Assembly: GCA_047495785.1 (NCBI GenBank)
Contig: JBLDXI010000024.1
Coordinates: forward strand, 3,472,001-3,536,000
Length of the DNA: 64,000 nucleotides
Origin: Lepidodermella squamata
Lineage: Eukaryota; Animalia; Gastrotricha
Direction of reading: 5' to 3'
Positions within the stretch are counted from its first letter, which is position 1; each line of letters begins with the position of its first letter. A program made the position numbers and the translations under genes. The notes beneath the pieces were generated by a model. The model worked only from the letters and a program-made list of their open reading frames with translations. It was not told the origin of the DNA and did no database searches. Positions 9,442 through 28,282 of this stretch are shown piece after piece.

Positions 9442-9987
9442 ATGGCAAGAAGTGACGATTCCGTAGAGATTTATCACGAGAAGCAGTCCCAAATGCTATG
9501 TGGACTTCATGCTTTGAACAATTTGCTGCAAAAGCGAGCTTTCAGCAAACATGACTTCGACGAGATTTGCAGCCGGTTAGCTCCGCGATCATCTGTCTTC
9601 AATCCTCATCGCAACTGGCTTGGCTTAGGTGATTATGACGTCAATGTGTTAACCATGGCCGTTGAATCTGCAGGATTCGAGCTATCATGGTTTGACAAGC
9701 GAAAGTCCGTCGATGACTTGAACCTATCTAATGTCATTGGCTTTCTATTAAATATTGCATCTAACGTGCAACTGGGAGCTTGCAGGCTTCCTGTTAAACG
9801 GCCGCATTGGATTGCAGTTAGATGGCTTTCGGAACCTCACAAGGCTTACTACAACCTCGATTCGAAGCTCTCAAAACCTCATCGCATTGGTTCAGATGAG
9901 ACTGATTTGAGAAAATATCTCGTACAGCAACTCGCGGACCAACGCGCTCAGCTGTTAGTAATTAAACAGCCCGAAGTCAAGCAGTGA
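9442..9987 (+). CDS. Josephin-domain deubiquitinase (JOSD1/2-like), intronless
   Basis: IYHEKQ...LCGLHALNN (catalytic Cys), GDYDVNV, HWIAVR (His), YYNLDSKL (Asp). Confidence 0.95.
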   Translation: MARSDDSVEIYHEKQSQMLCGLHALNNLLQKRAFSKHDFDEICSRLAPRSSVFNPHRNWLGLGDYDVNVLTMAVESAGFELSWFDKRKSVDDLNLSNVIGFLLNIASNVQLGACRLPVKRPHWIAVRWLSEPHKAYYNLDSKLSKPHRIGSDETDLRKYLVQQLADQRAQLLVIKQPEVKQ

Positions 9988-10126
9988 TGATTTTATAACT
10001 CGTCTCAATTTTATGCTCGCATGTGATAATTTACTTTTCAGTAGTTGAAATAAATTGTTAATTGGCAGATATTAAGTGGCGACCATATTACATTGAACTA
10101 TTTTTACTTTAGAACTGATTTAAATT

Positions 10127-11020
10127 ATGGCGTTGATAAGTCCTGCGGTCAGTTTATTGACTAATTAACTGTCATTATCAATTGTTATAATTTTCAGACG
10201 AAGCGCGCTGGAGCCACATTGTTGCCGTTCATTTTATCCTTCGCGGCTTATTTCAAATTCTACGGTGGTGCCGATAACGTTGACTTCGCCATTTATCCAC
10301 TTGCGAAGGCTTCTCCTATGGTTTCTTTACTTATCTTTGTTTACTTCAACAAACCTAAAAATGAGGAAGGGCAGAGCTATTCCAATCGAGTGTTTATGGG
10401 ACTTTTTGCATCACTCATTGGGGATATACTTATGATATTCGCTAAAACAGACAAGCGGTATTTAATTTATGGCATGGCAGTATTTGGAATAGCTCATTTT
10501 TTCTATCTGGCCGCATTTGGATTTAAACCATTCAGAGCGAAAATTTTCGCAGTTTGTTTCACTGGCTATGCGTGTAGCTTTCTATCTACAGCAGCGAAAC
10601 TTAGCCTGGGAATGAATATAGCACTAGCATCGTATGGGGCGATTTTAGCATGTATGGTCTGGCGAGCGTTGTCTCGAGCCGATAGCTTTGAGGATTTGTG
10701 GAAATTGCCTAATATATCTGCTGTCATAGGTTTGATTGAGCGGAACAGTCATTTTTGTGAAAAATATATATTTTTCCTTTTGAAGGCTCACTATTGTTCG
10801 CTGCTAGTGACACTATTTTGAGCCAGAAGATATTCAACAAGCCAGCCGATTTGACGACGGTTGAATTTATGCAGTTGGTCGTTATGTTGACCTATTATCT
10901 GGCCCAACTTGGTAAGATTAGAATTCCTGGGTAGCCAAAATTCACGTTTCCTAATTATTAGGTATTGCCCTATCGACCACCAAATCCAGCAAAAACTTTG
11001 AGAAGATTAAGAGAAAATAA
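10127..11020 (+). CDS. TMEM86/YhhN-family lysoplasmalogenase-like membrane protein, copy 1 (exons 10127-10147, 10198-10729, 10786-10911, 10962-11020)
   Basis: K..PM, GL..S.IGD, GM..F..AH..Y..AFG, M.WRA, G.LLF..SD, MLTYY.AQLGIALS: YhhN signatures. GT-AG introns in frame. Confidence 0.9.
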
Positions 11021-11104
11021 TTTATTGACGAGACACTGGCTTGCTTCGATTTTATTGATATCCGGTGATGATTTTTCCTAATATTCCCAAATAGATTTTT
11101 ACTC

Positions 11105-12664
11105 ATGGAATTTTTCGAGCATTACAAATATGTATTTTTGTACTCTGGAGTGGCTATTACATCCGCCTCCCTAGCCACTTATTACTGGGCATATTGCTAT
11201 GTAACGAAATACCGCAATATTTTCCGAGAGATGGGCCTTCCATACGTTAAACCAACAAGATGGCTCGGTACGTGGGGCGAATATTTACACGGCGAAAATT
11301 TCTTCGAGGCCGAGCAAGAACTTGTACGGAAACACGGCACGTTTTTCGGGATGTTCGAAGGCCGCCAGCCTACAATTATGGTCACGGAGCCCGAATTGAT
11401 CCGCCAAGTCTTGTTCAAAGACCACGAATCTTTCATAGATCACCGAAGCTATTTGAAGAGCCGAACACGGGCATTGGATTACGGTTTGACTGAACTGACT
11501 GGTAATAGGTGGAAACACGCGAGGCAAACTATCACCCCAGCTTTTACGCCGAATGCATTAAGGCGGATGACCCCTCTTATTCTGCAATCTGTCAAGCAAC
11601 TCGTTGCCAATATCGAGAAGCAGTGCGATTTGAACGAAGACAATGACATTAAGATGAACAGCGGCTGCTTCACCATGGATGTAATTGCTTCTGTTGCCTT
11701 TGGTATTGAGTTGGATTCTTTGAATAACCCGGATAATCCGTTTGTGGTAAATGCCCGAGCTGCATTTGCTAACGATAAGAAGTTAAAATACGTCATTACC
11801 TTGGTACTCTTATTTCCCGGGTTGTTCCAAATACTCATGAAGATGTCGTCTGATAAATCGAAAATGATGAAGCCGTTCGTCTTTTTCACGCAAATCACCG
11901 AGCAAGAAATGAAACGGCGACGTGATGAGAAAGTCGATCGACCTGATTTTCTGCAAATGACGATGAGCATGGAAAAGGACCCAGAGGATCCTCAGTACAA
12001 GGATTTCGTGGAAATAGACGAATTCGGCAAGAAATGGCTGAGAAATGGCTTGACTCACATGGAAATCATCGGGCAGGCGGTTCTGTTTTTCGTGGCTGGC
12101 TACGAAACGACGTCGAATGTTTTGGCTTTAACGCTGTTCGCCCTCAGTGAACACCCTGAATGCCAGGAAAAGTTGTATCAGGAAATCAAAGCGGCTTTGA
12201 AGGATGAAGATCCCAACATGGATTCCGTTCAAGATTTAAAATACCTCGAAATGTGCATCGATGAAACCCTGAGACTTTACGCCCCATTCATGAGGCTAGA
12301 ACGAGTCTGCACTAAGGATACACAGCTTGGAGGGTATCACATTCCCAAAGGCGTCGTAGTGCTTGTGCCGGTTAATGCTATCCATCATGACTCGAATGTT
12401 TGGTTCGAACCTGAAAAATTCGACCCTGAGCGCTTCGCCGATCCTGAAAACATTCCCCAACTGGGTTTCATGCCTTTCGGCCTTGGAAATCGTAACTGCA
12501 TTGGAATGAGACTTGCTTATTTGGAGCTTAAATTGGCTCTGGTCTGTTTGGTTCGAAGACTGAAGTTTTCAGTCTCGCCCAACTTGGAATTTCCGATAAA
12601 ATGGAAGCCGAGTCTTCTGCGAATAAACGCTAGTCCAATTTTGCTGAAAGCTGAATGTCGTTAA
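11105..12664 (+). CDS. Cytochrome P450, CYP3-clan-like, copy 1 (intronless CDS)
   Basis: N-terminal anchor, WKHAR, AGYETT, ETLR, PERF, FGLGNRNCIG heme motif. Confidence 0.96.
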   Translation: MEFFEHYKYVFLYSGVAITSASLATYYWAYCYVTKYRNIFREMGLPYVKPTRWLGTWGEYLHGENFFEAEQELVRKHGTFFGMFEGRQPTIMVTEPELIRQVLFKDHESFIDHRSYLKSRTRALDYGLTELTGNRWKHARQTITPAFTPNALRRMTPLILQSVKQLVANIEKQCDLNEDNDIKMNSGCFTMDVIASVAFGIELDSLNNPDNPFVVNARAAFANDKKLKYVITLVLLFPGLFQILMKMSSDKSKMMKPFVFFTQITEQEMKRRRDEKVDRPDFLQMTMSMEKDPEDPQYKDFVEIDEFGKKWLRNGLTHMEIIGQAVLFFVAGYETTSNVLALTLFALSEHPECQEKLYQEIKAALKDEDPNMDSVQDLKYLEMCIDETLRLYAPFMRLERVCTKDTQLGGYHIPKGVVVLVPVNAIHHDSNVWFEPEKFDPERFADPENIPQLGFMPFGLGNRNCIGMRLAYLELKLALVCLVRRLKFSVSPNLEFPIKWKPSLLRINASPILLKAECR

Positions 12665-13201
12665 ATTCACTCATGTCTTGACTGTCATTTATTTATTCCA
12701 GAAGGATCTTTCGCTTTTTTTCCCAAAGGTATTTTTTTATCTATCAAGCTAAGTTTTCGATTAAAGTTTCAATTCACTATTATTTTATTTCATAGGTTTT
12801 ATATAAAACATTTTTATGCGTTTCTGGTTACTTACGCTGCTCGGTCGTCCGCAAGTGGGGATGAAATTTTGTTACTTCCTCCTTGTTGATGTAAAAATGT
12901 AGCTCTCATCACGTGGAGTGGAAAAGGCATTATAACTAGTACCGAACAGCCACTCTTCATTTTCTTGAGTCTAGACCTTCGCAATTTAGTAAGGGAACAA
13001 TGCGTTTCAAGTTTCTTAATGGATTTAGATAGACCTTTTAGGAGAGTTTAAGGAATGAATATTCGATTAGTCAAGTCGAAAAGCGCTATCGATTTGTGTT
13101 GTTGATTTCACCACTATTACTTAGCCCCTGAATTTTTCTGAATTTTTGAACTCATGATTATTTTTCACCGATTGCCCAATTTTTTCTTATAGAAGTTGAA
13201 A

Positions 13202-14752
13202 ATGGATTTTTTTGAGAATTACAAGCACGTAGTTTTGTACTCCGGAGTGGTGATTGGCACCGTTACCCTTGCCACTTACTACTGGGCATATCGATATGTG
13301 ACGAAGTATCGCGATATATTCCGCGAAATGGGCCTTCCATATGTTGAGCCAACTAGGTGGCTCGGTTCATGGGGCTTGTATTTGGAGGGCGAAGACTACT
13401 TTGAAGTCGAGAAAGAGCTTATACGCAAACATGGCACATTTTTCGGGCTATTCGAAGGCCGCCAGCCGTCGATCATGATTTCAGAACCTGAACTGATTCG
13501 TCAGGTACTGTTCAAGGACAACGAGTCTTTCATGGATCGTCGAATTTACGTGCAAAGCCGATCCCGGGCATTGGATTTTGGCATAACCCAATTAACTGGG
13601 CAAAGGTGGAAACACGCTAGGCAAGCAATCACACCAGCGTTCACGCCAAATGCATTAAGGCGGATGACCCCTCTTGTGTTGCAATCTGTCAAGCAACTTG
13701 TGGCTAATATCGAGAAGCAGATAGATTTGAATGAAGATATTGACATCAAAAGGAATTGCGGTTGCTTCACTATGGATGTGATTGCCACTGTAGCCTTCGG
13801 CTTTGAGCTCGATTCGTTTAATAACCCGAACAATCCATTCGTAGAATATGCGCAGACTGCTTTTGCAATCGATCAACAAGTTATAACCATGTTGCTTTTG
13901 TTCCCTGGGTTGTTCCGTCTTCTCGGTAAAATGATGTCCGACACTTCGAAAATGATGAAACCATTCGCGTTTTTCACGAAAATCACCGAGGAAGAAATAA
14001 AACGACGACATGATGAGAAAGTCGATCGACCTGACTTCCTGCAAATGATCATGAATTTGGAGAAGGACCCTGAGGATCCTCAAAACAAGGAATTCTTGGA
14101 AGTTGACGAATTCGGGCTAAAATGGCTGACAAACGGTTTGACTCACCTGGAAGTTGTGGGGCAGGCGGTCCTGTTCTTTGCGGCTGGCAACGAGACAACG
14201 GCTAGCGTTTTGACCTTAACGCTGTTCGCCCTCAGTGAACACCCTGAATGCCAGGATAAGTTGTATCAGGAAATAAAAGTGGCTTTGAAGGATGAAGATC
14301 CCAACATGGATTCAGTTCAGGAGTTAAAATATTTGGAAATGTGTATCAATGAGACAATGCGACTTTACTGCCCTCTAACAAGGCTGGAGCGCGTCTGCGT
14401 CAAAGACACTCAAGTGGGAGGTTACCACATCCCCAAAGGTGTAGTTGTTCTTGTCCCGGCTAATGTTATTCAACATGATCCTCACATTTGGTCCGAGCCT
14501 GAGAAGTTCGACCCAGAACGATTTTCTGATTCCGAAAATATTCCTCAACTAGGATACATGCCCTTCGGCCTTGGAAATCGTAACTGCATTGGAATGAGAC
14601 TGGCTTATTTGGAGCTCAAATTTGCTCTGGTTTGTTTGATTCGAAAACTGAAGTTTTCGATCTCGCCTGATATGCCGACTCCGATTAAATGGAAGCATAG
14701 TCATTTGCGTGTTAATGCTACTCCCATCTTGCTGAAAGCAGAAAGTCGGTGA
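13202..14752 (+). CDS. Cytochrome P450, CYP3-clan-like, copy 2
   Basis: WKHAR, AGNETT, ETMR, PERF, FGLGNRNCIG. First ATG is at 13202. Confidence 0.96.
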   Translation: MDFFENYKHVVLYSGVVIGTVTLATYYWAYRYVTKYRDIFREMGLPYVEPTRWLGSWGLYLEGEDYFEVEKELIRKHGTFFGLFEGRQPSIMISEPELIRQVLFKDNESFMDRRIYVQSRSRALDFGITQLTGQRWKHARQAITPAFTPNALRRMTPLVLQSVKQLVANIEKQIDLNEDIDIKRNCGCFTMDVIATVAFGFELDSFNNPNNPFVEYAQTAFAIDQQVITMLLLFPGLFRLLGKMMSDTSKMMKPFAFFTKITEEEIKRRHDEKVDRPDFLQMIMNLEKDPEDPQNKEFLEVDEFGLKWLTNGLTHLEVVGQAVLFFAAGNETTASVLTLTLFALSEHPECQDKLYQEIKVALKDEDPNMDSVQELKYLEMCINETMRLYCPLTRLERVCVKDTQVGGYHIPKGVVVLVPANVIQHDPHIWSEPEKFDPERFSDSENIPQLGYMPFGLGNRNCIGMRLAYLELKFALVCLIRKLKFSISPDMPTPIKWKHSHLRVNATPILLKAESR

Positions 14753-15589
14753 ATGTAGTATTCGAGTTTCAGTGACAAATATTTATTCCAGAAGGATCTT
14801 TCGTTATTTTCTTTCGTCTTTCGTTTCCCAAAGGTATTGTTTTTTATCTGCTGGGCAAATTATCAAATAAATCTGCATTACTATTTTTTTTATTTTATAG
14901 GTTTTTTAAACGAATGTCACCACGTTTCGTCACCTTCTATTTCAGCCGCAATTTCGGTGAGCATTCATAGTAATCACAGCTCTTATATAAATTCAGATAT
15001 AGTCTGGCGGTGAATTACAAGTGATCGATTAAATGTTTTCTTCATCTTCTTCACGACGCACAGGTTCTTCTGAGCCTGTCGCGCAACGTCGAATATCCTT
15101 CTCATTTCTTCTGTGGCGCTGGCACCGTTCTTCAGTTTTCCAAGTGTAAAACCTGTTGGTAATCCCCGCAATGCAGATCTTGAATCCCAGTTTAGCGCGT
15201 TATTCTCTGCCAATTACGTGCTCATGTAACGGGCAGGGATAGCTAGAGTCAGGAACTCATAAGGTGTAAAGTATAATGCTCCAATCGCTAAAAGTGATAT
15301 CTCAATGAGCAATAACGTAGTTTATGACGTAACAGCTTCTTTTTTATTGAGCCTTTATTAACGGAATTCAGGAGAAAACGAGATTGTAGGCATGCTTCTT
15401 CATTTCCCCACCTTCAACTCAACTCAAAAATGACTGTTATAGAACACATCCTTATGGAATTTCTCGTAGTTGATCTCTTGGACTTTTTGTTGATCCTAAC
15501 TCATAGCAGCTAGTCGAATGATAAATTTCTTAATTTACATCGATGCTCAAATATAATTATGCTTTAATTTTGTCATTTAGTTGTTAAAC

Positions 15590-17158
15590 ATGGAATTTTT
15601 CGAAAATCACAAGCACTTATTTTTGTACTCCGGAGTGGTGATTGGCGCCGTTTCTTTAGCCACGTATTACTGGGCATATCGATATGTTACCAAATACCGA
15701 AACATTTTCCGAGAAATGGGCCTTCCATACGTTGAACCAACAACGTGGCTCGGTTCATGGGGCACGTATTTGGATGGCGAAGATTTCTTCGAAGTCGAAC
15801 AGGAGCTTGTCAAGAAACACGGCAAATTTTTCGGGCTATTCGAAGGCCGTCAGCCTTCGATAATGGTTTCAGAACCTGACTTGATTCGCCAGGTCTTGAT
15901 TAAAGACCACGAATCCTACATCGATCGGCGGAATTTCGTGCAAAGCCGAAGTCGCCCGTTGGACTTTGGACTAACTATGTTAACTGGACAAAGGTGGAAG
16001 CATGTTAGACAAACGATCACTCCGGCATTTACGCCAAATGCGTTGAGGCGAATGACGCCACTTGTATTGCAATCTGTTAAGCAGCTTGTCGCTAACATCG
16101 AGAAGCAGTGCGATTTGAACGAGGACATTGACATAAAAATGAATTGCGGCTGCTTTACGATGGATGTGATTGCTTCCGTCGCCTTCGGCATTGAACTCGA
16201 CTCTTTGAATAACCCGAACAATCCGTTTGTCGAAAACGCTCGAGCTGCGTTTTCGAACGATATTACAAAAGGATCGATGAAATATTTCGTAATGTTAGTA
16301 TTCATGTTTCCTGGTATGTTTAATCTTCTCAACAAACTAACGTCGGACAACTCTAAATTGATGAAGCCGTTCGTGTTTTTCCATAAAATTACCGAACAGG
16401 AAATGAAGCGTAGACGCGATGAGAACGTTGATCGACCCGATTTCCTTCAAATGACGATGAATTTGGAAAAGGATCCAGAAGATCCGCAACACAAGGATTT
16501 CGTAGAAATCGACGAATTCGGCCAGAAATGGCTGAGAAATGGGTTGACTCACATGGAAATAATTGGACAGGCGGTTCTTTTCTTTGCTGCTGGCTACGAG
16601 ACTACGGCTAATGTTCTGGCTTTAACTCTTTTCGCCCTTAGCAAGCATCCGGAGTGTCAGGATAAATTGTATCAGGAGATCAAGGCAGCTCTTAAGGATG
16701 AAGATCCCAACATGGATTCCGTTCAGGATTTGAAATACCTTGAAATGTGCATCAACGAGACAATGCGAATTTACTGCCCTCTTACGAGGCTTGAACGCTC
16801 TTGTACAAAGGACACTCAACTGGGAGGCTACCATATCCCTAAAGGTGTTGTAGTTCTCGTCCCGGCTAATGCTATTCAACACGATCCTAACGTTTGGGAC
16901 GAGCCTGAGAAGTTCGACCCTGAACGATTTGCTGATCCGGAAAATATTCCTCAACTAGGTTACATGCCTTTTGGACTTGGAAATCGAAACTGCATTGGAA
17001 TGAGGCTGGCCTATCTGGAGTTGAAGCTAGCCTTAGTTTGTCTGGTTCGGCAACTCAAATTTTCGATCTCTCCCAACATGCCTATTCCGATCAAATGGAA
17101 GATGAGTGCTTTGCGCATGAACGCAACTCCGATTTTGCTGAAAGCTGAGCGCCGATAA
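15590..17158 (+). CDS. Cytochrome P450, CYP3-clan-like, copy 3
   Basis: WKHVR, AGYETT, ETMR, PERF, FGLGNRNCIG. First ATG is at 15590. Confidence 0.96.
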   Translation: MEFFENHKHLFLYSGVVIGAVSLATYYWAYRYVTKYRNIFREMGLPYVEPTTWLGSWGTYLDGEDFFEVEQELVKKHGKFFGLFEGRQPSIMVSEPDLIRQVLIKDHESYIDRRNFVQSRSRPLDFGLTMLTGQRWKHVRQTITPAFTPNALRRMTPLVLQSVKQLVANIEKQCDLNEDIDIKMNCGCFTMDVIASVAFGIELDSLNNPNNPFVENARAAFSNDITKGSMKYFVMLVFMFPGMFNLLNKLTSDNSKLMKPFVFFHKITEQEMKRRRDENVDRPDFLQMTMNLEKDPEDPQHKDFVEIDEFGQKWLRNGLTHMEIIGQAVLFFAAGYETTANVLALTLFALSKHPECQDKLYQEIKAALKDEDPNMDSVQDLKYLEMCINETMRIYCPLTRLERSCTKDTQLGGYHIPKGVVVLVPANAIQHDPNVWDEPEKFDPERFADPENIPQLGYMPFGLGNRNCIGMRLAYLELKLALVCLVRQLKFSISPNMPIPIKWKMSALRMNATPILLKAERR

Positions 17159-17348
17159 ATCCAATTTTTGGGCATGACAACTGTTTATTCCAGATTTGCT
17201 AATTATGACAATCTTGAAATTGAATGCGGTTTTTCTTATTAATTTGACAGATTTTCAATTTCTCATTTGCTAGACGAAATCGACTTATTTACCGGTGAAA
17301 CTTTTCCAATAAATCATCTTTTTCTGATTTTTAGATATTTTTTAAATA

Positions 17349-17490
17349 ATGGATGTGTTAACTTTTGGAAGCGCTAGTTTATGCCCAGTTCTACTGGCTA
17401 TTTTTTGCCTGCCGCCCGCCTCTCGAGATTCCAGTCTGCCTTGTAAGACTGGACTCCCTCAATGATCCGATAGCGTGGTCCGGAATTTCG
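17349..17490 (+). pseudogene. Degenerate 5' stub of a copy-6-type P450
   Basis: Follows ag|atatt like copy 6. Reads MDVLTFG...LAIF...RD...GLPQ*; ccgatagcgtggtccgga aligns by eye with copy-6 ccgaagccttggtctgga. Contains indels and a stop. Confidence 0.65.
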
Positions 17491-18442: not shown

Positions 18443-20011
18443 ATGGAATTTTTCGTTAACAACAAACGCATCTTTCTGTATACTGGAGTGGCCATTGGAT
18501 CCGTCTCCCTAGCCACGTATTACTTGGCGTATCGATATGTGATGAAGTACCGCAATATCTTCCGCGAAATGGGCCTTCCATACGTGGAACCAACAACGTG
18601 GCTTGGTTCATGGGGCGCGTATTTGGAGGGCGAAGACTTTTTCGAAGTTGAGCGTGATCTCATCGCAAAACATGGCAACTTCTTTGGGATGTTCGAAGGC
18701 CGTCAGCCTGCGATTATGGTTTCAGAACCGGATTTGATTCGGCAAGTGCTGTTCAAGGACCACGAATCTTACATGGATCGGCGAACTTTTCTGAAAAGCC
18801 GAAGTCGGGCGTTAGATTACGGTTTAACCGAATTGACTGGTAATAGGTGGAAACACGCGAGGCAAACTATCACCCCAGCTTTTACGCCGAATGCATTAAG
18901 GCGGATGACCCCTCTTATTCTGCAATCTGTCAAGCAACTCGTTGCCAATATCGAGAAGCAGTGCGATTTGAACGAAGACAATGACATCAAAGTGAACAGC
19001 GGCTGCTATTCTATGGATGTAATTGCTTCTGTAGCATTTGGTATTGAACTGGATTCGCTGAATAACCCGAACAATCCGTTTGTTGAAAATGCCCGCGCTG
19101 CGTTTTCGAACGATGTCACGAAAGGATCTATGAAATATATCGTAATTCTGGTATTTTCATTCCCTGGTTTGTTTAATCTTCTCAACCAAATGACATCCGA
19201 TAGTTCAGCATTGATGAAGCCGTTCGTGTTTTTCACGCAAATCACCAAGCAAGAAATGAAACGGCGACGTGATGAGAAAGTTGATCGACCCGATTTCCTT
19301 CAAATGACGATGAATTTAGAAAAGGACCCCGAGGATCCCGAACATAAAGATTTCGTAGAAATTGACGAATTCGGCCAGAAATGGCTGAGAAATGGGTTGA
19401 CTCACATGGAAATCATTGGGCAGGCGGTTCTGTTTTTCGCGGCTGGATACGAAACGACGTCAAATGTTTTGGCTCAAATGCTTTTCGCTCTTAGCATGCA
19501 CCCTGAATGTCAGCAAAAGCTGTATCAGGAGATCAAGGCAGCTCTTAAGGATGAAGATCCAAACATGGATTCCGTTCAAGAGTTGAAATACCTTGAAATG
19601 TGCATTAATGAGACAATGCGACTTCACTGCCCTGTTTCAAGGCTTGAACGTACCTGTACTAAGGACACTCAACTGGGAGGTTTCCATATTCCCCAAGGAA
19701 TCGCTGTTTTTATCCCGGCTAATGCCATTCAGCATGACCCTAACATTTGGAATGAACCTGAGAAGTTTGAACCTGAACGATTTGCTGACCCTGAGCGTGT
19801 ACCTCAGTTTGGCTTTATGCCTTTCGGACTTGGAAATCGCAACTGCATTGGAATGAGGCTGGCCTATTTGGAGCTGAAGCTAGCCTTAGTTTGTTTGGTT
19901 CGGCAACTCAAATTTTCGATCTCGCCAAATATGCCGATTCCGGTTAAATGGAAGCCGAGTCCTTTGCGCATGAATGCCACTCCGATTTTGCTGAAGGCTG
20001 AGCACCGATGA
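18443..20011 (+). CDS. Cytochrome P450, CYP3-clan-like, copy 4
   Basis: WKHAR, AGYETT, ETMR, PERF, FGLGNRNCIG. Confidence 0.96.
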   Translation: MEFFVNNKRIFLYTGVAIGSVSLATYYLAYRYVMKYRNIFREMGLPYVEPTTWLGSWGAYLEGEDFFEVERDLIAKHGNFFGMFEGRQPAIMVSEPDLIRQVLFKDHESYMDRRTFLKSRSRALDYGLTELTGNRWKHARQTITPAFTPNALRRMTPLILQSVKQLVANIEKQCDLNEDNDIKVNSGCYSMDVIASVAFGIELDSLNNPNNPFVENARAAFSNDVTKGSMKYIVILVFSFPGLFNLLNQMTSDSSALMKPFVFFTQITKQEMKRRRDEKVDRPDFLQMTMNLEKDPEDPEHKDFVEIDEFGQKWLRNGLTHMEIIGQAVLFFAAGYETTSNVLAQMLFALSMHPECQQKLYQEIKAALKDEDPNMDSVQELKYLEMCINETMRLHCPVSRLERTCTKDTQLGGFHIPQGIAVFIPANAIQHDPNIWNEPEKFEPERFADPERVPQFGFMPFGLGNRNCIGMRLAYLELKLALVCLVRQLKFSISPNMPIPVKWKPSPLRMNATPILLKAEHR

Positions 20012-20416: not shown

Positions 20417-20485
20417 GTGGACATGTTACTAATTGGTATTCTATCAATTTTATTCGTAATAATAATTGTTTCGCGTATTTCGTAC
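20417..20485 (+). pseudogene. Possible relic P450 N-terminal anchor (copy-6 type)
   Basis: DMLLIGILSILFVIIIVSRISY resembles copy-6 MFDLSIFGILIVIFLVIYFIAYRY and lies just after the post-copy-4 acceptor. Confidence 0.35.
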
Positions 20486-20893: not shown

Positions 20894-21100
20894 TCAACAT
20901 TTCATAGGTTTAGGTTTGCCATCCTGCAGCGATGCGGCCATCCACCTATCTCTGTCTTGCGCTTGCTCTCTCGCTTCGACCCGCGTCATGCCTAGATCCG
21001 TCACGTCTCGCTCTCGATCTCCCTGCCCTTCTCTACCGATGCTGGCCTCAAGGTCGTCCCTTCCCTCCTTAGCATTAAGGTCGCCCATACCGAAAGTCAT
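20894..21100 (-). mobile_element. Internally deleted RTE-clade LINE remnant
   Basis: Translation joins an APE-endonuclease motif (MGDLNAK.G....IG..G.G.R) directly to an RTE-type ORF C-terminus (DLGMTRVEAREQAQDRDRW). Confidence 0.65.
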
Positions 21101-21164
21101 GTTAAGTACTGATTTGCAGCATCTCGTTACAACTAAACATCTGCTCTATTTTTTCATATAGGTC

Positions 21165-22727
21165 ATGGAATTTTTTGATAACTACAAACGAATTTTTTTG
21201 TACACTGGAGTGGCCATTGGATCCATCTCCCTAGCTACGTATTACTTGGCATATCGATATGTGACGAAGTATCGCAATGTTTTCCGAGAAATGGGCCTCC
21301 CATACGTTGAACCTACAACGTGGCTCGGTTCATGGGGCGCGTATTTGGAGGGCGAAGATTTTTTCGAAGTAGAGCGAGATCTTATCGCAAAACATGGCAA
21401 CTTCTTTGGGATGTTCGAAGGTCGTCAGCCTGCGATTATGGTCTCAGAGCCGGATTTGATCCGCCAAGTCTTGATTAAAGACCACGAATCGTACTTGGAC
21501 CGTCGAAATTTCACGCAAACCCGACTTCGAGCATTGGATTTCGGCCTAACTATGCTAACTGGTCAAAGATGGAAACACGTTAGGCAAATGGTCACCCCGG
21601 CTTTCACGCCGAATGCATTAAGGCGGATGACCCCTCTTATTTTGCAATCTGTCAAGCAACTCGTTGTAAACATCGAGAAGCAGTGTGGCGAAGACATTGA
21701 CATTAAGATGAATTGCAGCTGTTTTACTATGGATGTGATTGCTTCCGTGGCGTTTGGGATCGAACTGGATTCTTTGAATAACCCGAACAATCCGTTTGTG
21801 GAAAATGGTAGAGCTGCTTTTTCGACTGATATCACGAAAGGATCAATGAAATATTTTGCGATTCTGGTATTTTCTTTTCCTGGATTGTTTCGACTAATCA
21901 ACACAATGACGTCCGATTCGTCGAAATTTATGAAGCCGTACGTGTTTTTCCATAAAATTACTGAGCAGGAAATGAAGCGTAGACGCGATGAGAAGGTTGA
22001 TCGTCCTGATTTTATTCAAATGACGATGAATTTGGAAAAGGACCCTGAGGATCCTCAGTACAAAGATTTCGTGGAAATCGACGAATTCGGACTAAAATGG
22101 GTGAGAAATGGGTTGACTCACATGGAAATCATCGGGCAGGCGGTTCTATTTTTCGCGGCTGGCTACGAGACTACGGCCTTAACTCTGGCCTTAACGCTGT
22201 TCGCCCTTAGTGAACATCCTGAATGCCAAGAAAAGTTGTATGAGGAAATCAAAGCGGCTTTAAAGGATGAAGATCCCAACATGGATTCTGTTCAAGAGTT
22301 GAAATACCTCGAAATGGTCATCAATGAAACCCTGAGACTTTACTGCCCTGTTTCACGGTTGGAACGTACTTGTACTAAGGAAACCCAACTAGGGGGCTAC
22401 CGCATCCCTCATGGTGTCTTCGTTTTTATCCCGGCCAATGCCATACAGCATGATCCTACCATTTGGGACGAACCTGAAAAATTCGACCCGGAACGTTTCG
22501 CTGATCCTGAACACGTTCCTCAGCTGGGTTTTATGCCTTTCGGGCTTGGAAATCGAAATTGCATTGGAATGAGACTGGCATATCTGGAGATAAAATTGGC
22601 TCTTGTTTGTTTGATTCGCCAATTTAAATTTTCGGTCTCGCCGAACATGCCCGTTCCGATTAAATGGAAGCCTTTTGCCTTACGTATAAACGACAGTCCT
22701 ATTCAGCTGAGAGCTGAGCGCCGATAA
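21165..22727 (+). CDS. Cytochrome P450, CYP3-clan-like, copy 5
   Basis: WKHVR, AGYETT, ETLR, PERF, FGLGNRNCIG. Confidence 0.96.
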   Translation: MEFFDNYKRIFLYTGVAIGSISLATYYLAYRYVTKYRNVFREMGLPYVEPTTWLGSWGAYLEGEDFFEVERDLIAKHGNFFGMFEGRQPAIMVSEPDLIRQVLIKDHESYLDRRNFTQTRLRALDFGLTMLTGQRWKHVRQMVTPAFTPNALRRMTPLILQSVKQLVVNIEKQCGEDIDIKMNCSCFTMDVIASVAFGIELDSLNNPNNPFVENGRAAFSTDITKGSMKYFAILVFSFPGLFRLINTMTSDSSKFMKPYVFFHKITEQEMKRRRDEKVDRPDFIQMTMNLEKDPEDPQYKDFVEIDEFGLKWVRNGLTHMEIIGQAVLFFAAGYETTALTLALTLFALSEHPECQEKLYEEIKAALKDEDPNMDSVQELKYLEMVINETLRLYCPVSRLERTCTKETQLGGYRIPHGVFVFIPANAIQHDPTIWDEPEKFDPERFADPEHVPQLGFMPFGLGNRNCIGMRLAYLEIKLALVCLIRQFKFSVSPNMPVPIKWKPFALRINDSPIQLRAERR

Positions 22728-22927
22728 CTTTTATTTTTTAAAGTTGACAGTCTGCTTGTTACTTCGAATTGACCATCATAAAATTTGATTTTTTTTGCTG
22801 ATTTTTTGCCGTATTTTCCAAATGTTCTCTTATGCCAGATAATACCTATTTTGCGGTTTACCGGTGCTTTTTTTATTTTCCAATAAATAAACGTTTTTCT
22901 GATTTTTTCTAGATATTATATTCAGAA

Positions 22928-24469
22928 ATGTTTGATTTGTCAATTTTCGGAATTTTAATCGTCATTTTTCTGGTTATTTATTTCATTGCCTACCGATATG
23001 TCCATGCTCGTCGAGATTTTTTCCGTAATATCGGAATGCCTCACATCGCCCCGAAGCCTTGGTCTGGAACTTGGGCGGCGTATTTAGACGGCGACGATTT
23101 TTTCGAAGTCGAACGCAATCTCGTTCGCGAAAACGGGCCCTTTTTCGGCTTTTTCGAAGGCCGAAGCCCTGTTATCGTGATTTCCGACCCTGAACTTATC
23201 CGCCAGGTCACCTTAAAAGACCACGAATCATTTATCGATCGTCGAAATCTGGTAACTAGCCGCAGGAGTGCGCTAGATTTCGGCGTGGCAAATTTAACCG
23301 GCTCAAGGTGGAAAAATGTTCGAAGGCAAATCACGCCGGCTTTCACTCCGAATTCGATGCGAAAAATCGAACCACTCGTTTTAAAAGCCGTCAAGCAATT
23401 GGTTGACAATTTGGAGAAGCATTGCGACAGCAGCACTGATGTTGACGTGAAGCACTACGCCGGCTGCTTTACCTTAGACACAATCGCTTCGGTCGCATTT
23501 GGGCTAGACATTGATTCTTCAAACAACCCAGATAATGAATTTGTAAAAAATGTCCGATCAGCGTTTTCGGTGAATTTCGCTAAAGGCGGCTTGAGGTATT
23601 TCCTTTACATAGTTTTCATGTTTCCGGCCGTTTTTTCGCTGATGGTCAGAATTTTCGGGTCGAAAATGATGAAACCTTTCGTATTTTTTTCGCAAGTCGT
23701 TGAACAAGAAATTAAGCGAAGACGCGAAAATTGCGTCGAGCGGCCTGATTTTTTGCAGATGGTAATCGGTTTGGAAAAAGATCCGAACGATCCGAATTTT
23801 CGGGATTTTCTTGAATACGACGAATTCGGCCTGCCGTGGTTGAAAAATGGCCTAACTCGAATGGAAATTTTAGGCCAATCCGTGCTATTTTTCGCAGCTG
23901 GTTACGAAACTACGGCTAGTACGCTGTCCTCTGCCCTATTACTACTGAGTCAAAATCCAGATTGCCAGGAAAAATTGTATCAAGAAATTAAGGCGGCTTT
24001 CAAAAATAACGAAGATCCAACGTTGGATTCAATTCACGATTTGAAATATTTGGAAATGTGTATAAATGAAACCATGCGAGTGATGAGTTCATTTTTACGG
24101 CTAGAAAGGACTTGTACGAAAGACACTCAGTTGGGTGGGTATCAAATACCGAAAGGAATTGCGGTTCTAGTGCCGATAAGTGCTATTCACCAAGATCCGA
24201 ATTTGTGGCATGAGCCCGAACGATTTGACCCGGAGCGATTTGCCAACCCGGAAAATATCCCGCCATTTGCTTTCATGCCGTTCGGGGTCGGAAATCGAAG
24301 CTGTATCGGCATGAGATTGGCTATGCTCGAGCTTAAATTGGCTCTGGTTTGCCTGTTAAGGCGGATGCGATTTTCGGTCTCGCCAGATATGACATTTCCT
24401 ATCAAGTGGCGACCAGCTGGTTTGCGTATCAATGAGACTCCGATTTTACTTCGGGCGGAATTTCGATGA
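22928..24469 (+). CDS. Cytochrome P450, CYP3-clan-like, copy 6 (most divergent paralogue)
   Basis: WKNVR, AGYETT, ETMR, PERF, FGVGNRSCIG. Distinct N-terminus. Confidence 0.96.
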   Translation: MFDLSIFGILIVIFLVIYFIAYRYVHARRDFFRNIGMPHIAPKPWSGTWAAYLDGDDFFEVERNLVRENGPFFGFFEGRSPVIVISDPELIRQVTLKDHESFIDRRNLVTSRRSALDFGVANLTGSRWKNVRRQITPAFTPNSMRKIEPLVLKAVKQLVDNLEKHCDSSTDVDVKHYAGCFTLDTIASVAFGLDIDSSNNPDNEFVKNVRSAFSVNFAKGGLRYFLYIVFMFPAVFSLMVRIFGSKMMKPFVFFSQVVEQEIKRRRENCVERPDFLQMVIGLEKDPNDPNFRDFLEYDEFGLPWLKNGLTRMEILGQSVLFFAAGYETTASTLSSALLLLSQNPDCQEKLYQEIKAAFKNNEDPTLDSIHDLKYLEMCINETMRVMSSFLRLERTCTKDTQLGGYQIPKGIAVLVPISAIHQDPNLWHEPERFDPERFANPENIPPFAFMPFGVGNRSCIGMRLAMLELKLALVCLLRRMRFSVSPDMTFPIKWRPAGLRINETPILLRAEFR

Positions 24470-24561
24470 TTATTTCAACTTACGTGCTTTCATTTGAATT
24501 TATTTTAAAATTGAATTTTCCATAATTTATTTGCTATTTTTCTAGATTTTTATACGGTAAA

Positions 24562-24689
24562 ATGAAGCTTGTTTTTCGGCAACTTCAGGGCGCTGAAAAG
24601 CCGTTGGATTTTGACCCGTCCGAAACAATCTCAAATGTTAAAAAATGTCATTCCAGTTGCCTATCTCTTGAAAAGGAAAATTTTGAAGG
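24562..24689 (+). pseudogene. UBL4A exon-1 pseudogene
   Basis: Near-identical to 27625-27778 but with a +1 A frameshift and two deletions. No exon 2 follows. Confidence 0.85.
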
Positions 24690-25297
24690 GTACCTCAATT
24701 TTGTTTTTTCTTGAAAATATCGAGTTTTTCTAAAAAATTCAACAATTAAAAAATTTTAAATTTTAAATTTTTTAAACGAAATTATAATTTTAATCAATTC
24801 AAAATTGAAATATTTTATTTTTTAATTTTTGAGTTAATTTGGGACGAGCCGGAGCTCTCTGACCCCGATTTCACTATGGTTGGTAGCTCTATTTATCCAA
24901 GAATTCTTAAGTTTATTTAATTTGGCAATGTCCTGTACGACAAAGAGACGACATGATGCGTTCAATGCGATTTTTAATGCCATGATTCTCACTTTTCCAC
25001 AATCAAGTTTTTTGCTATATTTTGGAAAAGCTTGATACCGGTTATTCTTATTTTTGAACCGGATGACTTTATTTTCAAACGAGTGGAAGATGTTGGAACC
25101 GGTTTCTATTGATAAACTTTTGTTTTTCATTTTTTCGGTATTTTAGCAGAAGTTATCAATATTTTGGCCTTTGAGAAATTAAAGTGTTGCTTTTCCCTTT
25201 TTAAATTTCGCTCTTTTATGCTGAATATGTTTCCTTATGCAGATGCATTCCTTAAATTATTGTTAATCTAACTTTTGTATAACCCTAGATATTTGCG

Positions 25298-26866
25298 ATG
25301 GAATTTTTCGAAAATCACAAAGGCGCTATTTTGTACTCCGGAGTTGCCATAGGAGCTTTTTCCTTGGCTTCTTACTACCTGGCTTACCGATACGCCACAA
25401 AATATCGCGGCATATTCCGCGAAATCGGGATACCCTACGTTGAACCTACTACCTGGCTCGGTTCACTAGGCACCTACTTCGAGGGGGAGAATTTCTTCGA
25501 AGTTGAGCAAGAATTGATTCGTAAAAACGGCAAATTCTTCGGCCTATTCGAAGGCCGTTATCCATCCATTATGGTCGCCGAGCCTGAACTTATCCGGCAG
25601 GTTCTTTTGAAAGACCACGAATCTTTCATGGACCGGCGAGTTTTGATAAAAAGCCGATCTCGACCTGTTGAATATGGCCTAACAGTGTTAACTGGTCAAA
25701 GGTGGAAACACGTTCGCCAAGCTATAACCCCGGCTTTCACGCCAAATGCGTTGAGGCGGATGACTCCTTTGGTTTTACAATCTGTTGAGCAACTCGTAGC
25801 TAATATCGAGAAGCAATGCGATTTAAACGAAGATATCGATATCAAGATGAATTGTGGATGCTTCACTATGGACGTGATCGCTTCGGTTGCTTTCGGAATC
25901 GAACTTGATTCGTTGAATAATCCGAATAATCCGTTTGTCGAAAACGCTCGAGCTGCGTTTGCCGTTGATTTCACGAAAGGAGCGATGAAGTACTTCATCA
26001 TGATGATATTCGTTTTCCCACATTTGTTCGCTTTTCTGAACAATTTATCGGGCAATAATTCGGCCTTCATGAAGCCTTTCGTGTTTTTCACGAAAATTAC
26101 TGAGCAAGAAATGAGGCGAAGGCGCGAACAAAAAATTGAGCGACCTGATTTTCTTCAAATGACAATGTTACTAGAAAAAGACCCTGAGGATCCGCAGAAT
26201 AAGGATTTTGTCGAAGTCGATGAATTCGGGCAGAAATGGCTGAGAAACGGGTTGACTCATATGGAAATTGTGGGACAGGCCGTTCTCTTCTTCGCAGCTG
26301 GTTATGAAACTACGGCTAATATTCTGGCACTAACCCTTTACGCCTTGAGCAAGCACCCTGAATGTCAAGAGAAGTTGTACGAAGAAGTCATAGCAAATTT
26401 GAAAAATGACGCTCCCACCATGGATTCAGTTCAGGAATTTAAATATCTCGAAATGTGCATAAATGAAACCATGCGACTTTATTGTCCGCTTTCAAGGCTT
26501 GAAAGGATCTGTACAAAGGAAACACAACTGGGTGGTTATCGCATCCCTAAGGACATGGCCATCCTTGTCCCGGCTAATGCGATCCAGCTGGATCCAAATA
26601 TCTGGTATGAGCCGGAGAAATTCGACCCTGAGCGATTTTCTGACCCCGAACGAATTCCCCAGCTCGGCTTCATGCCGTTTGGTCTCGGAAATCGAAATTG
26701 CATTGGGATGAGACTGGCTTACTTAGAACTGAAACTCGCCCTGGTTTGCCTGGTTCGAAAATTGAAGTTTTCGATTTCGCCGAATATGGAAGAACCTATC
26801 AAGTGGAAAGTCAGCGCTTTACGAATGAATGCGACTCCAATTTTACTTAAAGCTGAGCGAAGATAA
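25298..26866 (+). CDS. Cytochrome P450, CYP3-clan-like, copy 7
   Basis: WKHVR, AGYETT, ETMR, PERF, FGLGNRNCIG. Confidence 0.96.
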   Translation: MEFFENHKGAILYSGVAIGAFSLASYYLAYRYATKYRGIFREIGIPYVEPTTWLGSLGTYFEGENFFEVEQELIRKNGKFFGLFEGRYPSIMVAEPELIRQVLLKDHESFMDRRVLIKSRSRPVEYGLTVLTGQRWKHVRQAITPAFTPNALRRMTPLVLQSVEQLVANIEKQCDLNEDIDIKMNCGCFTMDVIASVAFGIELDSLNNPNNPFVENARAAFAVDFTKGAMKYFIMMIFVFPHLFAFLNNLSGNNSAFMKPFVFFTKITEQEMRRRREQKIERPDFLQMTMLLEKDPEDPQNKDFVEVDEFGQKWLRNGLTHMEIVGQAVLFFAAGYETTANILALTLYALSKHPECQEKLYEEVIANLKNDAPTMDSVQEFKYLEMCINETMRLYCPLSRLERICTKETQLGGYRIPKDMAILVPANAIQLDPNIWYEPEKFDPERFSDPERIPQLGFMPFGLGNRNCIGMRLAYLELKLALVCLVRKLKFSISPNMEEPIKWKVSALRMNATPILLKAERR

Positions 26867-27028
26867 CTTGAATCATCGAATTTTTAACAATGATTTTTCT
26901 TTGATCTATTTTTCCTCGTGATTATTTCTATTTTTTCTGCGTCTGAGAATAACCGGTATTTTTAATCTAAGTTGAACCGCTTTTTACATGGTTTAGTCAT
27001 TGTAATTATTTTGTAGAACTTTCTAATA

Positions 27029-27318
27029 ATGAAGCTAGTATTCCGCCAACTGCAGGGCGCTGAGAAGCCGTTGGAATTTGAACCATCTGAGTCGATCTCA
27101 AATGTCAAAAACGTGATTTCCGAACAATTCAGCATTCCGGTTTCAAATTTGAAGCTTCTGTTATAAGGCAAAATTTTGAAATGTAATTTTCCGTTGAATT
27201 TTGCGAAATTTGAAAAAAATTCATTCGATTTTCCTCAGATACCGATGCGGTTGCCTCGTGTGGTTTTGCTGAGAATGACAAAGTGAAGGTTGTCGGTCAG
27301 CCGACTCGGGCCCGTTAG
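27029..27318 (+). pseudogene. Older UBL4A pseudogene (exon 1, intron, truncated exon 2)
   Basis: MKLVFRQLQGAEKPLEFEPSESISNVKNVISEQFSIPVSNLKLLL*GKILK with in-frame TAA at 27164-27166. Exon 2 ends at ...VVGQPTRAR*. Confidence 0.85.
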
Positions 27319-27442
27319 CGTTTCGGTATAAGTCTCCATTCGACGGTAAGCCTTTTACCGCAGCACACAAACAAGGTTACCTTAATGCTCGTGCGGTAAA
27401 ACTAACGCCGCCTCGTATGTTAATTTTTACCGCACGCTCATA

Positions 27443-27532
27443 TCGCCTGATATGAAATTTCCTATCAAGTGGCGACCAGCCGGTTTGCGAATCAATGAGA
27501 CTCCGATTTTACTTCGCGCCGAATTTCGATGA
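27443..27532 (+). pseudogene. 3' fragment of a copy-6 P450 duplicate
   Basis: SPDMKFPIKWRPAGLRINETPILLRAEFR* matches 24380-24469 and is followed by the same 3' UTR and UBL4A start. Confidence 0.9.
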
Positions 27533-27624
27533 TTATTTCAACTTACGAGCTTTCTTTTGAATTTATTTGAAAATTGAATTCTCCATAATTTATTTGCTAT
27601 TTCTCTAGATTTTTATACGGTAAA

Positions 27625-28282
27625 ATGAAGCTTGTTTTTCGGCAACTTCAGGGCGCTGAAAAGCCGTTGGATTTTGACCCGTCCGAAACAATCTCAAATG
27701 TTAAAAATGTCATCTCAGAACAATTTCACATTCCAGTTGCCAATCTGAAGCTGCTCTTGAAAGGGAAAATTTTGAAAGGTACTACAATTTTGATTTTTTC
27801 TTGAATATTTAAATTTTTTTAAAAATTCGAAAATGCAATGACTTTAAATTTTAAATTTGTTAATTTCGAATTTGAATTTTGAATTTTTGAATTTTAAATT
27901 TTTTTCAGTTTTCATATATTTTTTTATTAAATTTTAAATTTTATTGCAGTTCCAATATTTCAGGATTTTTAATTATCTTTTCAATTTTTCAGATTCTGAT
28001 ACTGTTGCATCGAGTGGGTTGGTTGAAAATGACAAAGTGACCGTAGTCGGCCAAGCGACTCGGGCCGCCACATTCTCGCAAGTTCTTCAGCGCATCGCCG
28101 CGAAGCACGTGGGCGAAGAAAAAGCGACGCAAGTGCGTTCGCAGTTCGATCAACTGCTCGAGCGCCGCATCGCCCAGATGAGCATCGACGACATTGAACG
28201 CCTGGTTCGTAAGCTCGACGGCGGTGATAAATCGCAGAAATCGCAGCCGCCAGCATCCACGACATCGCCCATGCGGACCTAG
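27625..28282 (+). CDS. UBL4A: Ubiquitin-like protein 4A (Get5/UBL4A) (exons 27625-27778, 27993-28282)
   Basis: N-terminal UBL (MKLVFRQLQG...LKLLLKGKILKD) plus a C-terminal helix MSIDDIERLV matching the UBL4A TUGS motif (LTLDDIERL). Confidence 0.8.

Follow-up and report, generated by a model that had tools for sequence, protein, structure and literature searches.

The analyzed window, a 64-kb stretch of forward-strand DNA from Lepidodermella squamata, contains a run of ten genes on a single strand (+): a Josephin-domain deubiquitinase gene, a TMEM86/YhhN gene, seven intronless clan-3 P450 genes (CYP1 to CYP7), and UBL4A. Open reading frames and Pfam identities bear out an earlier sequence-only reading of this run as ten co-oriented genes with a seven-P450 array. 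We found no Pfam-supported gene on the opposite strand between the ten genes. The divergent neighbor of the run is NIP7 (ORF at 8165-8734, − strand; Pfam pre-PUA_NIP7, 4e-24, and UPF0113, 4e-15), and the 707-nt NIP7–Josephin interval (8735-9441) is the sole obvious place for a promoter at the head of the run. Conservation of the gene order was looked for in relatives and found in none.

The Josephin gene (JOSD; 9442-9987, +; Pfam Josephin, 3e-25) has no intron, and its top outside matches are to josephin-2, at 50-54%. TMEM86, of the lysoplasmalogenase type, spans 10127-11020 (+) in four exons (10127-10147, 10198-10727, 10784-10911, and 10962-11020), with a Pfam YhhN match of 1e-22 on the exon-2 ORF. 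The working UBL4A gene (27625-28282, +) has two exons (27625-27778 and 27993-28282). Searched singly rather than as a joined protein, exon 1 matches ubiquitin at 4e-10, and exon 2 matches Tugs at 4e-06 with a score of 27.3 bits, slightly below the 27.7-bit cut-off. The domain make-up of UBL4A/GET5, an N-terminal ubiquitin-like domain and a C-terminal, BAG6-tethering Tugs domain, is present. TMEM86 introns 1 and 2 are removed in RNA contigs from run X1, with GT..AG ends; TMEM86 intron 3 and stop codon, as well as the UBL4A splice sites, were assigned from sequence.

The P450 genes lie head to tail on the + strand at 11105-12664 (CYP1; Pfam p450, 2e-101), 13202-14752 (CYP2), 15590-17158 (CYP3), 18443-20011 (CYP4), 21165-22727 (CYP5), 22928-24469 (CYP6), and 25298-26866 (CYP7). 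Each encodes a P450 fold (Pfam PF00067, 1e-96 to 1e-103), and the heme-binding FxxGxRxCxG motif (FGLGNRNCIG in CYP1) and the I-helix AGxETT motif are intact in all seven. Every P450 ORF is uninterrupted, though neighboring genes carry introns. Among named proteins, mollusc CYP3A-like sequences and vertebrate thromboxane synthase match best (32-39% identity), and the best unnamed match reaches 43%; as expected of clan 3, the closest relatives with a name belong to the CYP3 or CYP5 family. The seven genes form one clade with CYP6 as its divergent, basal paralogue (59-63% amino acid identity to the others). Between paralogues, dS is at least 0.9 and thus saturated, with omega values of 0.04-0.15.

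The array is best read as the product of an old tandem expansion, specific to this lineage, in which an intronless clan-3 (CYP3/CYP5-like) P450 gene multiplied. Clan-3 P450s are known for lineage-specific tandem arrays of the CYP3, CYP6, CYP9, and CYP13 type, and the array per se is an ordinary P450 expansion: like those arrays, it comprises one head-to-tail clade under strong purifying selection that is closest to CYP3A and thromboxane synthase. Unlike them, every copy here is intronless beside intron-bearing neighbors, housekeeping genes flank the array at operon-like distances, and scars show en bloc duplication of a CYP–UBL4A junction.

We next considered the sites preceding the start codons. 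The sequence-only reading had listed an AG after a U-rich tract ahead of every P450, TMEM86, and UBL4A start codon, and all nine positions check out: each is an AG following a T-rich tract, 3-17 nt upstream of the ATG. Under a strict acceptor definition, such a site lies 3-17 nt upstream at seven of the ten gene starts; the corresponding background is 4.5% for all ATGs across the window and 10.6% for gap positions. The P450 sites are not independent of one another, because the genes are paralogous; about 35 nt around the acceptor are kept among them in spite of saturated dS. Acceptor AGs lie at 13191-13192 (CYP2), 15579-15580 (CYP3), 18433-18434 (CYP4), 21160-21161 (CYP5), 22911-22912 (CYP6), and 25287-25288 (CYP7). 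The acceptor-like AGs of CYP1 (11093-11094, where RNA coverage is zero) and working UBL4A (27607-27608, 16 nt before the ATG), both on the + strand, were likewise read from the DNA.

RNA contigs assembled from run X1 were mapped over 9350-15349. A 664-nt contig covers the Josephin gene with 0 differences; it matches the genome from 9398 and is preceded by 17 non-genomic letters, joined exactly at an acceptor AG (9398-9399, +) located 42 nt before the ATG. These 17 letters are absent from both strands of the window at up to 2 mismatches, the window holds no small SL RNA gene with a donor and an Sm site, and a metagenome scan for the 17-mer gave chance matches only. Leader trans-splicing is real at this locus, as seen on the Josephin message only. 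The TMEM86 contig starts precisely at its acceptor (AG 10111-10112, +), 14 nt before the ATG at 10127, and shows no leader letters. Its start at 10111 follows from the 36 letters to the left of intron 1, and bin depths agree exactly. Since the leader sits on Josephin, the first gene past the divergent promoter region, leaders and acceptors do not mark downstream operon genes here. The same has been noted for organisms without a specialized SL2, in which a leader does not identify downstream operon genes (SLOPPR paper, PMC7986045).

CYP1 and CYP2 are expressed, as RNA contigs are present for both (0 differences for CYP1). Coverage is absent over the last TMEM86 exon and the CYP1 5' end, and the CYP2 contig begins past its ATG. 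No X1 contig in 9350-15349 bridges 10045-10110, 11021-11104, or 12665-13201; contigs drop rare forms, and the stretches of zero contig depth at 10950-11149 and 12550-12749 are holes that can prove nothing. The gaps preceding CYP2 and CYP3 do contain low-depth contigs (depth 1-5, versus 30-145 in coding sequence), which may stem from DNA carry-over or from another transcript. One gap contig bears an insertion allele at 12954-12959.

The spacing of the genes falls into two classes. The Josephin–TMEM86, TMEM86–CYP1, and CYP5–CYP6 spacers measure exactly 139, 84, and 200 nt, the values first reported. A further 92-nt spacer had been taken to link CYP6 to UBL4A; it is present twice, between CYP6 and a truncated UBL4A pseudo-copy and between a 90-nt CYP6 relic and working UBL4A, and does not link CYP6 to the working gene. 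Spacers with too little room for a promoter are found at four junctions (139, 84, 200, and 92 nt), and the other five P450–P450 gaps, at 537, 837, 1284, 1153, and 828 nt, are longer. The CYP7–UBL4A gap is 758 nt.

Several short spacers also contain processing signals. A Josephin AATAAA (10049-10054, +) lies 57 nt before the TMEM86 acceptor, and the CYP1 acceptor lies 73 nt beyond the TMEM86 stop codon. Within the CYP5–CYP6 spacer (22728-22927, +), AATAAATAAA at 22882-22891 stands ~20 nt upstream of the CYP6 acceptor; this is the most operon-like junction within the array. For each of CYP1, CYP2, and CYP3, an AATAAA or ATTAAA signal follows the stop codon by 96-150 nt and precedes the next acceptor by 400-1100 nt. 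A candidate GTTAAT donor at 10057, 56 nt ahead of the TMEM86 acceptor, would define an intron of normal local length (~50-56 nt in X1 contigs). The claim that the short gaps hold no convincing donor is accordingly not strictly true; no X1 contig uses this possible site.

Some of the DNA in the long gaps is not regulatory but represents scars of duplication. Downstream of CYP3, at 17159-17370 (+), alignment identifies a copy of the CYP5–CYP6 spacer that retains its AATAAA and acceptor, as well as a degenerate CYP6-like start (blastn, 75-86% to 22876-22952); the 3' flank, signal, and acceptor are conserved downstream of both CYP3 and CYP5. UBL4A pseudo-copy A (24562-24840, +), 92 nt past CYP6, has a frameshift and a deletion in exon 1 and ends abruptly within the intron. 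Pseudo-copy B (27029-27312, +) follows CYP7 by 162 nt; an acceptor AG of its own precedes it at 27015-27016, codon 46 is a stop, and the copy ends abruptly in exon 2. Compared with exon 1 of the real gene, copy B shows silent differences at 21 codons and 6 residue changes, meaning that it once was a working gene and evolved under constraint. A relic of the last 90 nt of CYP6 lies at 27443-27532 (+; blastn; tblastn, 88% over 33 amino acids), and this relic and the 92-nt spacer that follows share 94% identity with 24380-24562. Overall, the CYP–UBL4A junction has been copied three times.

We favor, with evenly divided confidence, an old tandem expansion of P450 genes in a genome that uses leader splicing, with operon-type coupling confined to the short spacers. 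A P450 gene would have multiplied between Josephin–TMEM86 and UBL4A in a compact, leader-adding invertebrate genome, each gene retaining a short conserved acceptor before its ATG to which either the leader or a candidate 5' UTR exon would be joined. Transcription would begin in the NIP7/Josephin divergent region. Josephin and TMEM86, probably with CYP1, would form one precursor, cut by polyadenylation and trans-splicing 40-75 nt apart, and the CYP5–CYP6 and CYP–UBL4A junctions would be built likewise. Operon coupling at these short spacers (Josephin–TMEM86–CYP1, CYP5–CYP6, and CYP–UBL4A) is plausible. The gaps of 0.5-1.3 kb most likely reflect separate start sites followed by an outron, perhaps with some read-through. 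We infer every polycistronic step, as well as leader use at the P450s and UBL4A.

Might the coupling instead extend across the whole run? The sequence-only reading proposed an 18-kb, ten-gene operon under a single promoter. In such a model, a precursor of ~19 kb would start upstream of Josephin and be resolved by the leader at nine acceptors, and the array could grow inside the operon because a tandem copy would not have to bring a promoter with it. The single strand with no Pfam-supported opposite-strand gene in between, the acceptor at every gene, and the low-depth gap contigs fit such a precursor, with the caveat given above on what those contigs may be. The long gaps are partly CYP6 5' and UBL4A relics and not obvious promoters (no promoter has been shown in any of them), and in the 758-nt gap upstream of UBL4A, a housekeeping gene, only pseudogene debris is found. 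Nor do long gaps exclude read-through, because the median operon spacer in Trichuris is 517 nt (PMC7986045). We nevertheless consider a single promoter unlikely because of the long gaps, five of nine at 0.5-1.3 kb, and because seven of the ten genes are tandem duplicates. Tandem copies are co-oriented automatically, leaving only four independent units; in addition, CYP1 to CYP3 have poly(A) signals well ahead of the next acceptor, and no bridging X1 contig was found over 9350-15349. A second proposal, in which an upstream genomic leader exon is cis-spliced to mutually exclusive terminal exons, each a whole coding sequence, suits the single-exon P450s with an acceptor in front. This mechanism is excluded for Josephin within the window by the absence of its leader letters and is highly implausible overall: Josephin and TMEM86 are separate contigs with separate acceptors, and local introns are tens of nucleotides rather than kilobases long.

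The locus may alternatively contain no operon, each gene having its own promoter and start; at the acceptor, leader trans-splicing of a monocistronic RNA or ordinary cis-splicing would remove a short outron or an intron in the 5' UTR, and the short spacers would then hold compact promoters, or promoters would lie within the 3' end of the preceding gene. The leader on Josephin, a first gene, shows that trans-splicing here requires no operon, and the lack of a bridging contig in 9350-15349 agrees with this account. GTTAAT at 10057 would supply a 56-nt intron into the TMEM86 acceptor, and working UBL4A retains the CYP6 3' 90 nt and 92-nt spacer at 94% identity, possibly a compact promoter carried along. 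Against it, stop-to-acceptor spacers of 73-125 nt also house the upstream 3' UTR and poly(A) signal, leaving almost no promoter room, and the TMEM86 contig has its 5' break exactly at its acceptor AG, as at the Josephin leader junction. We regard separate promoters throughout as possible but doubtful.

Coupling at the short spacers resembles the SL operons of nematodes and flatworms (C. elegans SL2-type, S. mansoni, Macrostomum lignano), in which unrelated same-strand genes are joined, the next ATG has an unpaired acceptor close upstream, and a poly(A) signal precedes that acceptor by tens of nucleotides. Published operon spacers are ~100 nt in C. elegans, and for S. mansoni the median is 99 nt (PMC7986045, PMC12582326), and the spacers of 73-185 nt here match both. 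The leader here is also found on a first or monocistronic gene, as is SL1 in nematodes. Unlike in those operons, the contigs over 9350-15349 show no polycistronic RNA and no downstream-gene leader; no specialized SL2-type leader is known here, and most array junctions are 0.5-1.3 kb. Tunicate operons (Ciona, Oikopleura) similarly use a single leader for operons and single genes, so that only spacing tells the classes apart (PMC7986045); their spacers are ~1-60 nt, versus 73 nt from stop codon to acceptor for the shortest here.

Our literature search found no paper on leader splicing in gastrotrichs, and if the short-spacer pairs are true operons, this would be a documented locus for a leader-splicing/operon system in a poorly studied animal lineage. 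It is improbable that the P450 family grew inside a leader-resolved operon, with copies carrying only an acceptor and poly(A) signal and being expressed at once from the Josephin promoter. If true, the array would be one or a few long polycistrons tying an inducible-type detoxification family to housekeeping genes, and the downstream-gene relics at breakpoints (CYP6 5', UBL4A) would be its footprints. What sets this locus apart is a gene family that expanded between operon-like junctions and left datable scars; it may offer a natural experiment on whether tandem duplication comes cheaply inside operons, where copies would be promoter-free.

Open reading frames and Pfam matches bear out the claim of ten co-oriented genes, all on the plus strand within 9442-28282. 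The run opens with an intronless Josephin-domain deubiquitinase (9442-9987; Pfam 3e-25), continues with a TMEM86/YhhN-type membrane protein (exons 10127-10147, 10198-10727, 10784-10911 and 10962-11020; 1e-22 for the large exon), and closes with UBL4A (exon 1, 27625-27778, ubiquitin 4e-10; exon 2, 27993-28282, Tugs 4e-06); the TMEM86 and UBL4A matches were obtained with single exons as queries. Between them lie seven uninterrupted P450 reading frames of 513-522 aa: CYP1 (11105-12664), CYP2 (13202-14752), CYP3 (15590-17158), CYP4 (18443-20011), CYP5 (21165-22727), CYP6 (22928-24469) and CYP7 (25298-26866), with Pfam p450 matches of 1e-96 to 1e-103. Upstream of Josephin, NIP7 (8165-8734) lies on the minus strand at a distance of 707 nt, which makes this interval the natural location of a promoter. 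The studied region is also flanked by a trypsin-like protease fragment (5888-6481, minus strand, 4e-20) and a small heat-shock protein gene (HSP20; 32667-33296, plus strand, 8e-11). A full-length U5 spliceosomal snRNA gene (31839-31956, minus strand; Rfam RF00020, 91.7 bits, E 1e-14) lies about 3.5 kb 3' of UBL4A, outside the ten-gene run, and was the only match of the Rfam search.

For RNA evidence we used assembled contigs from X1 and X2, the only two public sequencing runs that contain this DNA, over 9350-15349, a segment chosen for its two tightest gene junctions; such contigs lose rare forms, and we did not use gene-to-gene differences in depth as evidence. X2 covers introns and gaps equally at about 1% divergence, and is DNA from another strain or haplotype. 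X1 behaves as RNA: TMEM86 introns 10148-10197 and 10728-10783 are spliced out with GT..AG ends. The X1 contig of Josephin is 664 nt long, matches 9398-10044 with 0 differences, and carries 17 additional 5' letters, AATTTGATTTGTGTCTA, its leader ending in ...TTTGTGTCTA(AG). These 17 letters are absent from both strands of the 64-kb window with up to 2 mismatches allowed. Josephin thus acquires its leader by trans-splicing to the AG acceptor at 9398-9399, a mechanism known from nematodes, flatworms and tunicates. A leader exon spliced in cis, the alternative raised in the sequence-only reading, is excluded for Josephin within the window by the absence of these letters, and we consider it scarcely credible for the locus.

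The X1 contig over TMEM86 intron 1 extends 36 letters to the left of that intron, placing the contig start at 10111 in exact agreement with the bin depths. This position is the A of TMEM86's predicted acceptor AG, and the Josephin contig shows the same offset. The break is indirect evidence that the sequence before the AG varies between molecules, as leader variants or unspliced RNA. Among the contigs over 9350-15349, that of Josephin carries a non-genomic leader (17 letters), and that of TMEM86 came without reported leader letters. CYP1 and CYP2 are expressed, judging from their X1 contigs, with X1 coverage lacking at the last exon of TMEM86 and at the 5' ends of CYP1 and CYP2. Depth is 0 in bins 10950-11149 and 12550-12749, which take in the TMEM86-CYP1 spacer, the start of the CYP1-CYP2 gap and some coding sequence, and coverage holes of this kind prove nothing. 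Contigs at depth 1-5 in the gaps upstream of CYP2 and CYP3 could derive from precursor RNA, from a different transcript or from carried-over DNA.

X1 contigs, one of the low-depth ones among them, also show an insertion allele between CYP1 and CYP2 at 12954-12959. The loose ends to its left and right have TGTTTTTA in common; this looks like the target-site duplication of a mobile element missing from the window and from X2. Two further X1 contigs link opposite strands, at 14708/14899 (depth 11.4) and 15216/15319 (depth 6.8). Either these are fold-back molecules or they arose as cDNA artefacts close to where CYP2 is probably polyadenylated (AATAAA at 14866); no long inverted repeat matching these positions was found.

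Scanned against metagenomes, the 17-letter leader gave at least 120 matches, almost all in gut or environmental bacteria, and we regard these as chance, with no donor following the leader among the matches listed. The literature searched contained no study of gastrotrich leader splicing. In Schistosoma mansoni the leader has the 3' sequence ...CTTGTGATTTGTTGCATG (PMC4694641 Table 2, PMC7986045). This sequence has the 8-mer TGATTTGT in common with the leader here, as far as the 3' part of the latter is visible (AATTTGATTTGTGTCTA, then AG), a match with a chance probability that we roughly estimate at 0.01-0.02. If this genome is that of a gastrotrich, a phylum that some phylogenies place as sister to flatworms, the match hints at a common origin of the two leaders.

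All nine AGs listed in the sequence-only reading indeed follow T-rich tracts, 3-17 nt upstream of a start codon. Under a strict definition, an acceptor is present at 7 of the 10 gene starts, compared with 4.5% of window ATGs and 10.6% of gap positions. This enrichment exceeds chance, with the P450 acceptors not independent of one another because the genes are paralogous. Similarity upstream of the P450 paralogues ends about 35 nt 5' of the acceptor. Since this acceptor block persists despite saturated dS, as does the 3' flank that contains the poly(A) signal, both are probably under selection.

The short spacers of 139, 84 and 200 nt proposed from the sequence are exact. At Josephin-TMEM86, an AATAAA at 10049 lies 57 nt upstream of the acceptor; at TMEM86-CYP1, 73 nt separate the stop codon from the acceptor; and at CYP5-CYP6, AATAAATAAA lies about 20 nt upstream of the acceptor. 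The 92-nt spacer described between CYP6 and UBL4A is real but links no two working genes; it is present twice, after CYP6 and before the working UBL4A. The remaining P450-P450 gaps measure 537, 837, 1284, 1153 and 828 nt; CYP7 and UBL4A are 758 nt apart. The poly(A) signals of CYP1, CYP2 and CYP3 lie 96-150 nt past the stop codon, with the next acceptor hundreds of nucleotides further on.

The array also carries scars of its duplications, all on the plus strand. A truncated and frameshifted UBL4A pseudo-copy (A; 24562-24840) begins 92 nt past CYP6. Directly ahead of the working UBL4A, the last 90 nt of CYP6 recur as a relic (27443-27532) followed by the second 92-nt spacer, and together the two are 94% identical to 24380-24562. 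Pseudo-copy B (27029-27312), 162 nt past CYP7 and with its own acceptor, differs from exon 1 of the real UBL4A by 21 silent codon differences and 6 replacements, including one stop. This excess of silent changes indicates that it was long a working gene, and therefore that CYP and UBL4A were duplicated as a two-gene unit. Directly 3' of CYP3, 17159-17370 is a repeat of the spacer between CYP5 and CYP6, including the AATAAA and the acceptor, together with a degenerate CYP6-like start; related sequence also occupies roughly the first 130 nt 3' of CYP4. Such relics of downstream genes are the expected residue of tandem duplication with the right breakpoint inside the downstream gene, so the long gaps are partly debris and not necessarily regulatory DNA. 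A search of these gaps for decayed whole P450 genes returned short relics only. Between pseudo-copy B and the CYP6 relic lies an unexplained piece of about 120 nt (27320-27442) in which TTACCGCA / TGCGGTAA is present three times (27356, 27393, 27428), twice in direct and once in inverted orientation; breakpoint filler, the footprint of a small element or a cluster of binding sites could each account for it.

No promoter was recognised in the long gaps, where reading frames gave no Pfam match and sequences had no further copies within the window. Two short minus-strand reading frames, 14983-15213 (76 aa, CYP2-CYP3 gap) and 20894-21100 (68 aa, CYP4-CYP5 gap), had a by-eye likeness to transposon relics (a transposase HTH region; a LINE ORF2 tail), which finds no support in these searches; low-depth X1 contigs overlie the first. 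ACCGGT palindromes show a mild enrichment too weak to use (5 in array gaps against 1.4 expected). All five within the array (17291, 22860, 25037, 25098, 26952) fall in gaps, two at matching places in the homologous CYP3 and CYP5 3' flanks and two 200-261 nt upstream of CYP7; the motif could be regulatory, in numbers too small to say.

Among named proteins, the P450s are closest to CYP3A-like proteins of molluscs and to thromboxane synthase of vertebrates (32-39% identity); the top match overall (43%) comes from a metagenome contig, as an ORF that is unnamed and lacks introns. Taking the P450 and Josephin searches together, the nearest proteins share 43-54% identity. The seven form one clade in which CYP6 is basal and the other six lie close together, with amino acid identities of 75-85% among the six and 59-63% to CYP6. 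All seven retain intact haem-binding and I-helix motifs, with saturated dS (at least 0.9) and omega values of 0.04-0.15. By these measures the copies are old, working duplicates in a lineage-specific clan-3 expansion. The nearest relatives, in ENA metagenome ERZ23486787 (L001 452-2095, 43% over full length; L002 1425-3024, 52% over half), contain no introns or almost none, suggesting an intron loss older than the expansion. Neither TMEM86 nor UBL4A lies beside these relatives (43-52%), whose neighbours differ, and Josephin relatives on longer contigs are without YhhN or P450 neighbours. Gene-order conservation was not found among relatives, a look-alike search of the locus was also empty, and exact-protein look-ups of CYP1 and Josephin returned no database record.

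How far these genes are co-transcribed turns largely on spacing. Josephin, the first gene after the divergent promoter region, itself has a leader, so neither leader nor acceptor marks a downstream operon gene. Where an organism lacks a specialised SL2, monocistronic genes also receive leaders, and spacing alone separates the classes (PMC7986045). Operon spacers are about 100 nt in C. elegans, with a median of 99 nt in S. mansoni (PMC7986045, PMC12582326), and the four short junctions here (Josephin-TMEM86, TMEM86-CYP1, CYP5-CYP6 and the 92-nt CYP-UBL4A spacer) match them. No X1 contig bridges a gap within 9350-15349, in an assembly that drops rare forms. That the locus holds no operon at all, each gene having its own promoter, is somewhat unlikely.

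A single operon of all ten genes, driven from one upstream promoter as the sequence-only reading had it, would span about 19 kb. Read-through of the longer gaps is conceivable, since the median operon spacer in Trichuris is 517 nt (PMC7986045) and the gaps are partly debris. However, five gaps of 0.5-1.3 kb are too long by spacing, and CYP1, CYP2 and CYP3 have their own poly(A) signals far upstream of the next acceptor. Moreover, tandem copies share their orientation by origin, so co-orientation adds little and four independent units remain. We consider the whole-run operon improbable. The most likely picture, at about even chances, is that the P450 family expanded in tandem long ago in a genome with leader splicing, that genes are coupled as in operons at the short spacers alone, and that the long gaps contain separate starts. 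The interest of the locus lies in a gene family that has grown between operon-like junctions and left its scars behind, and it makes testable the idea that operons allow tandem copies to be expressed without a promoter of their own.
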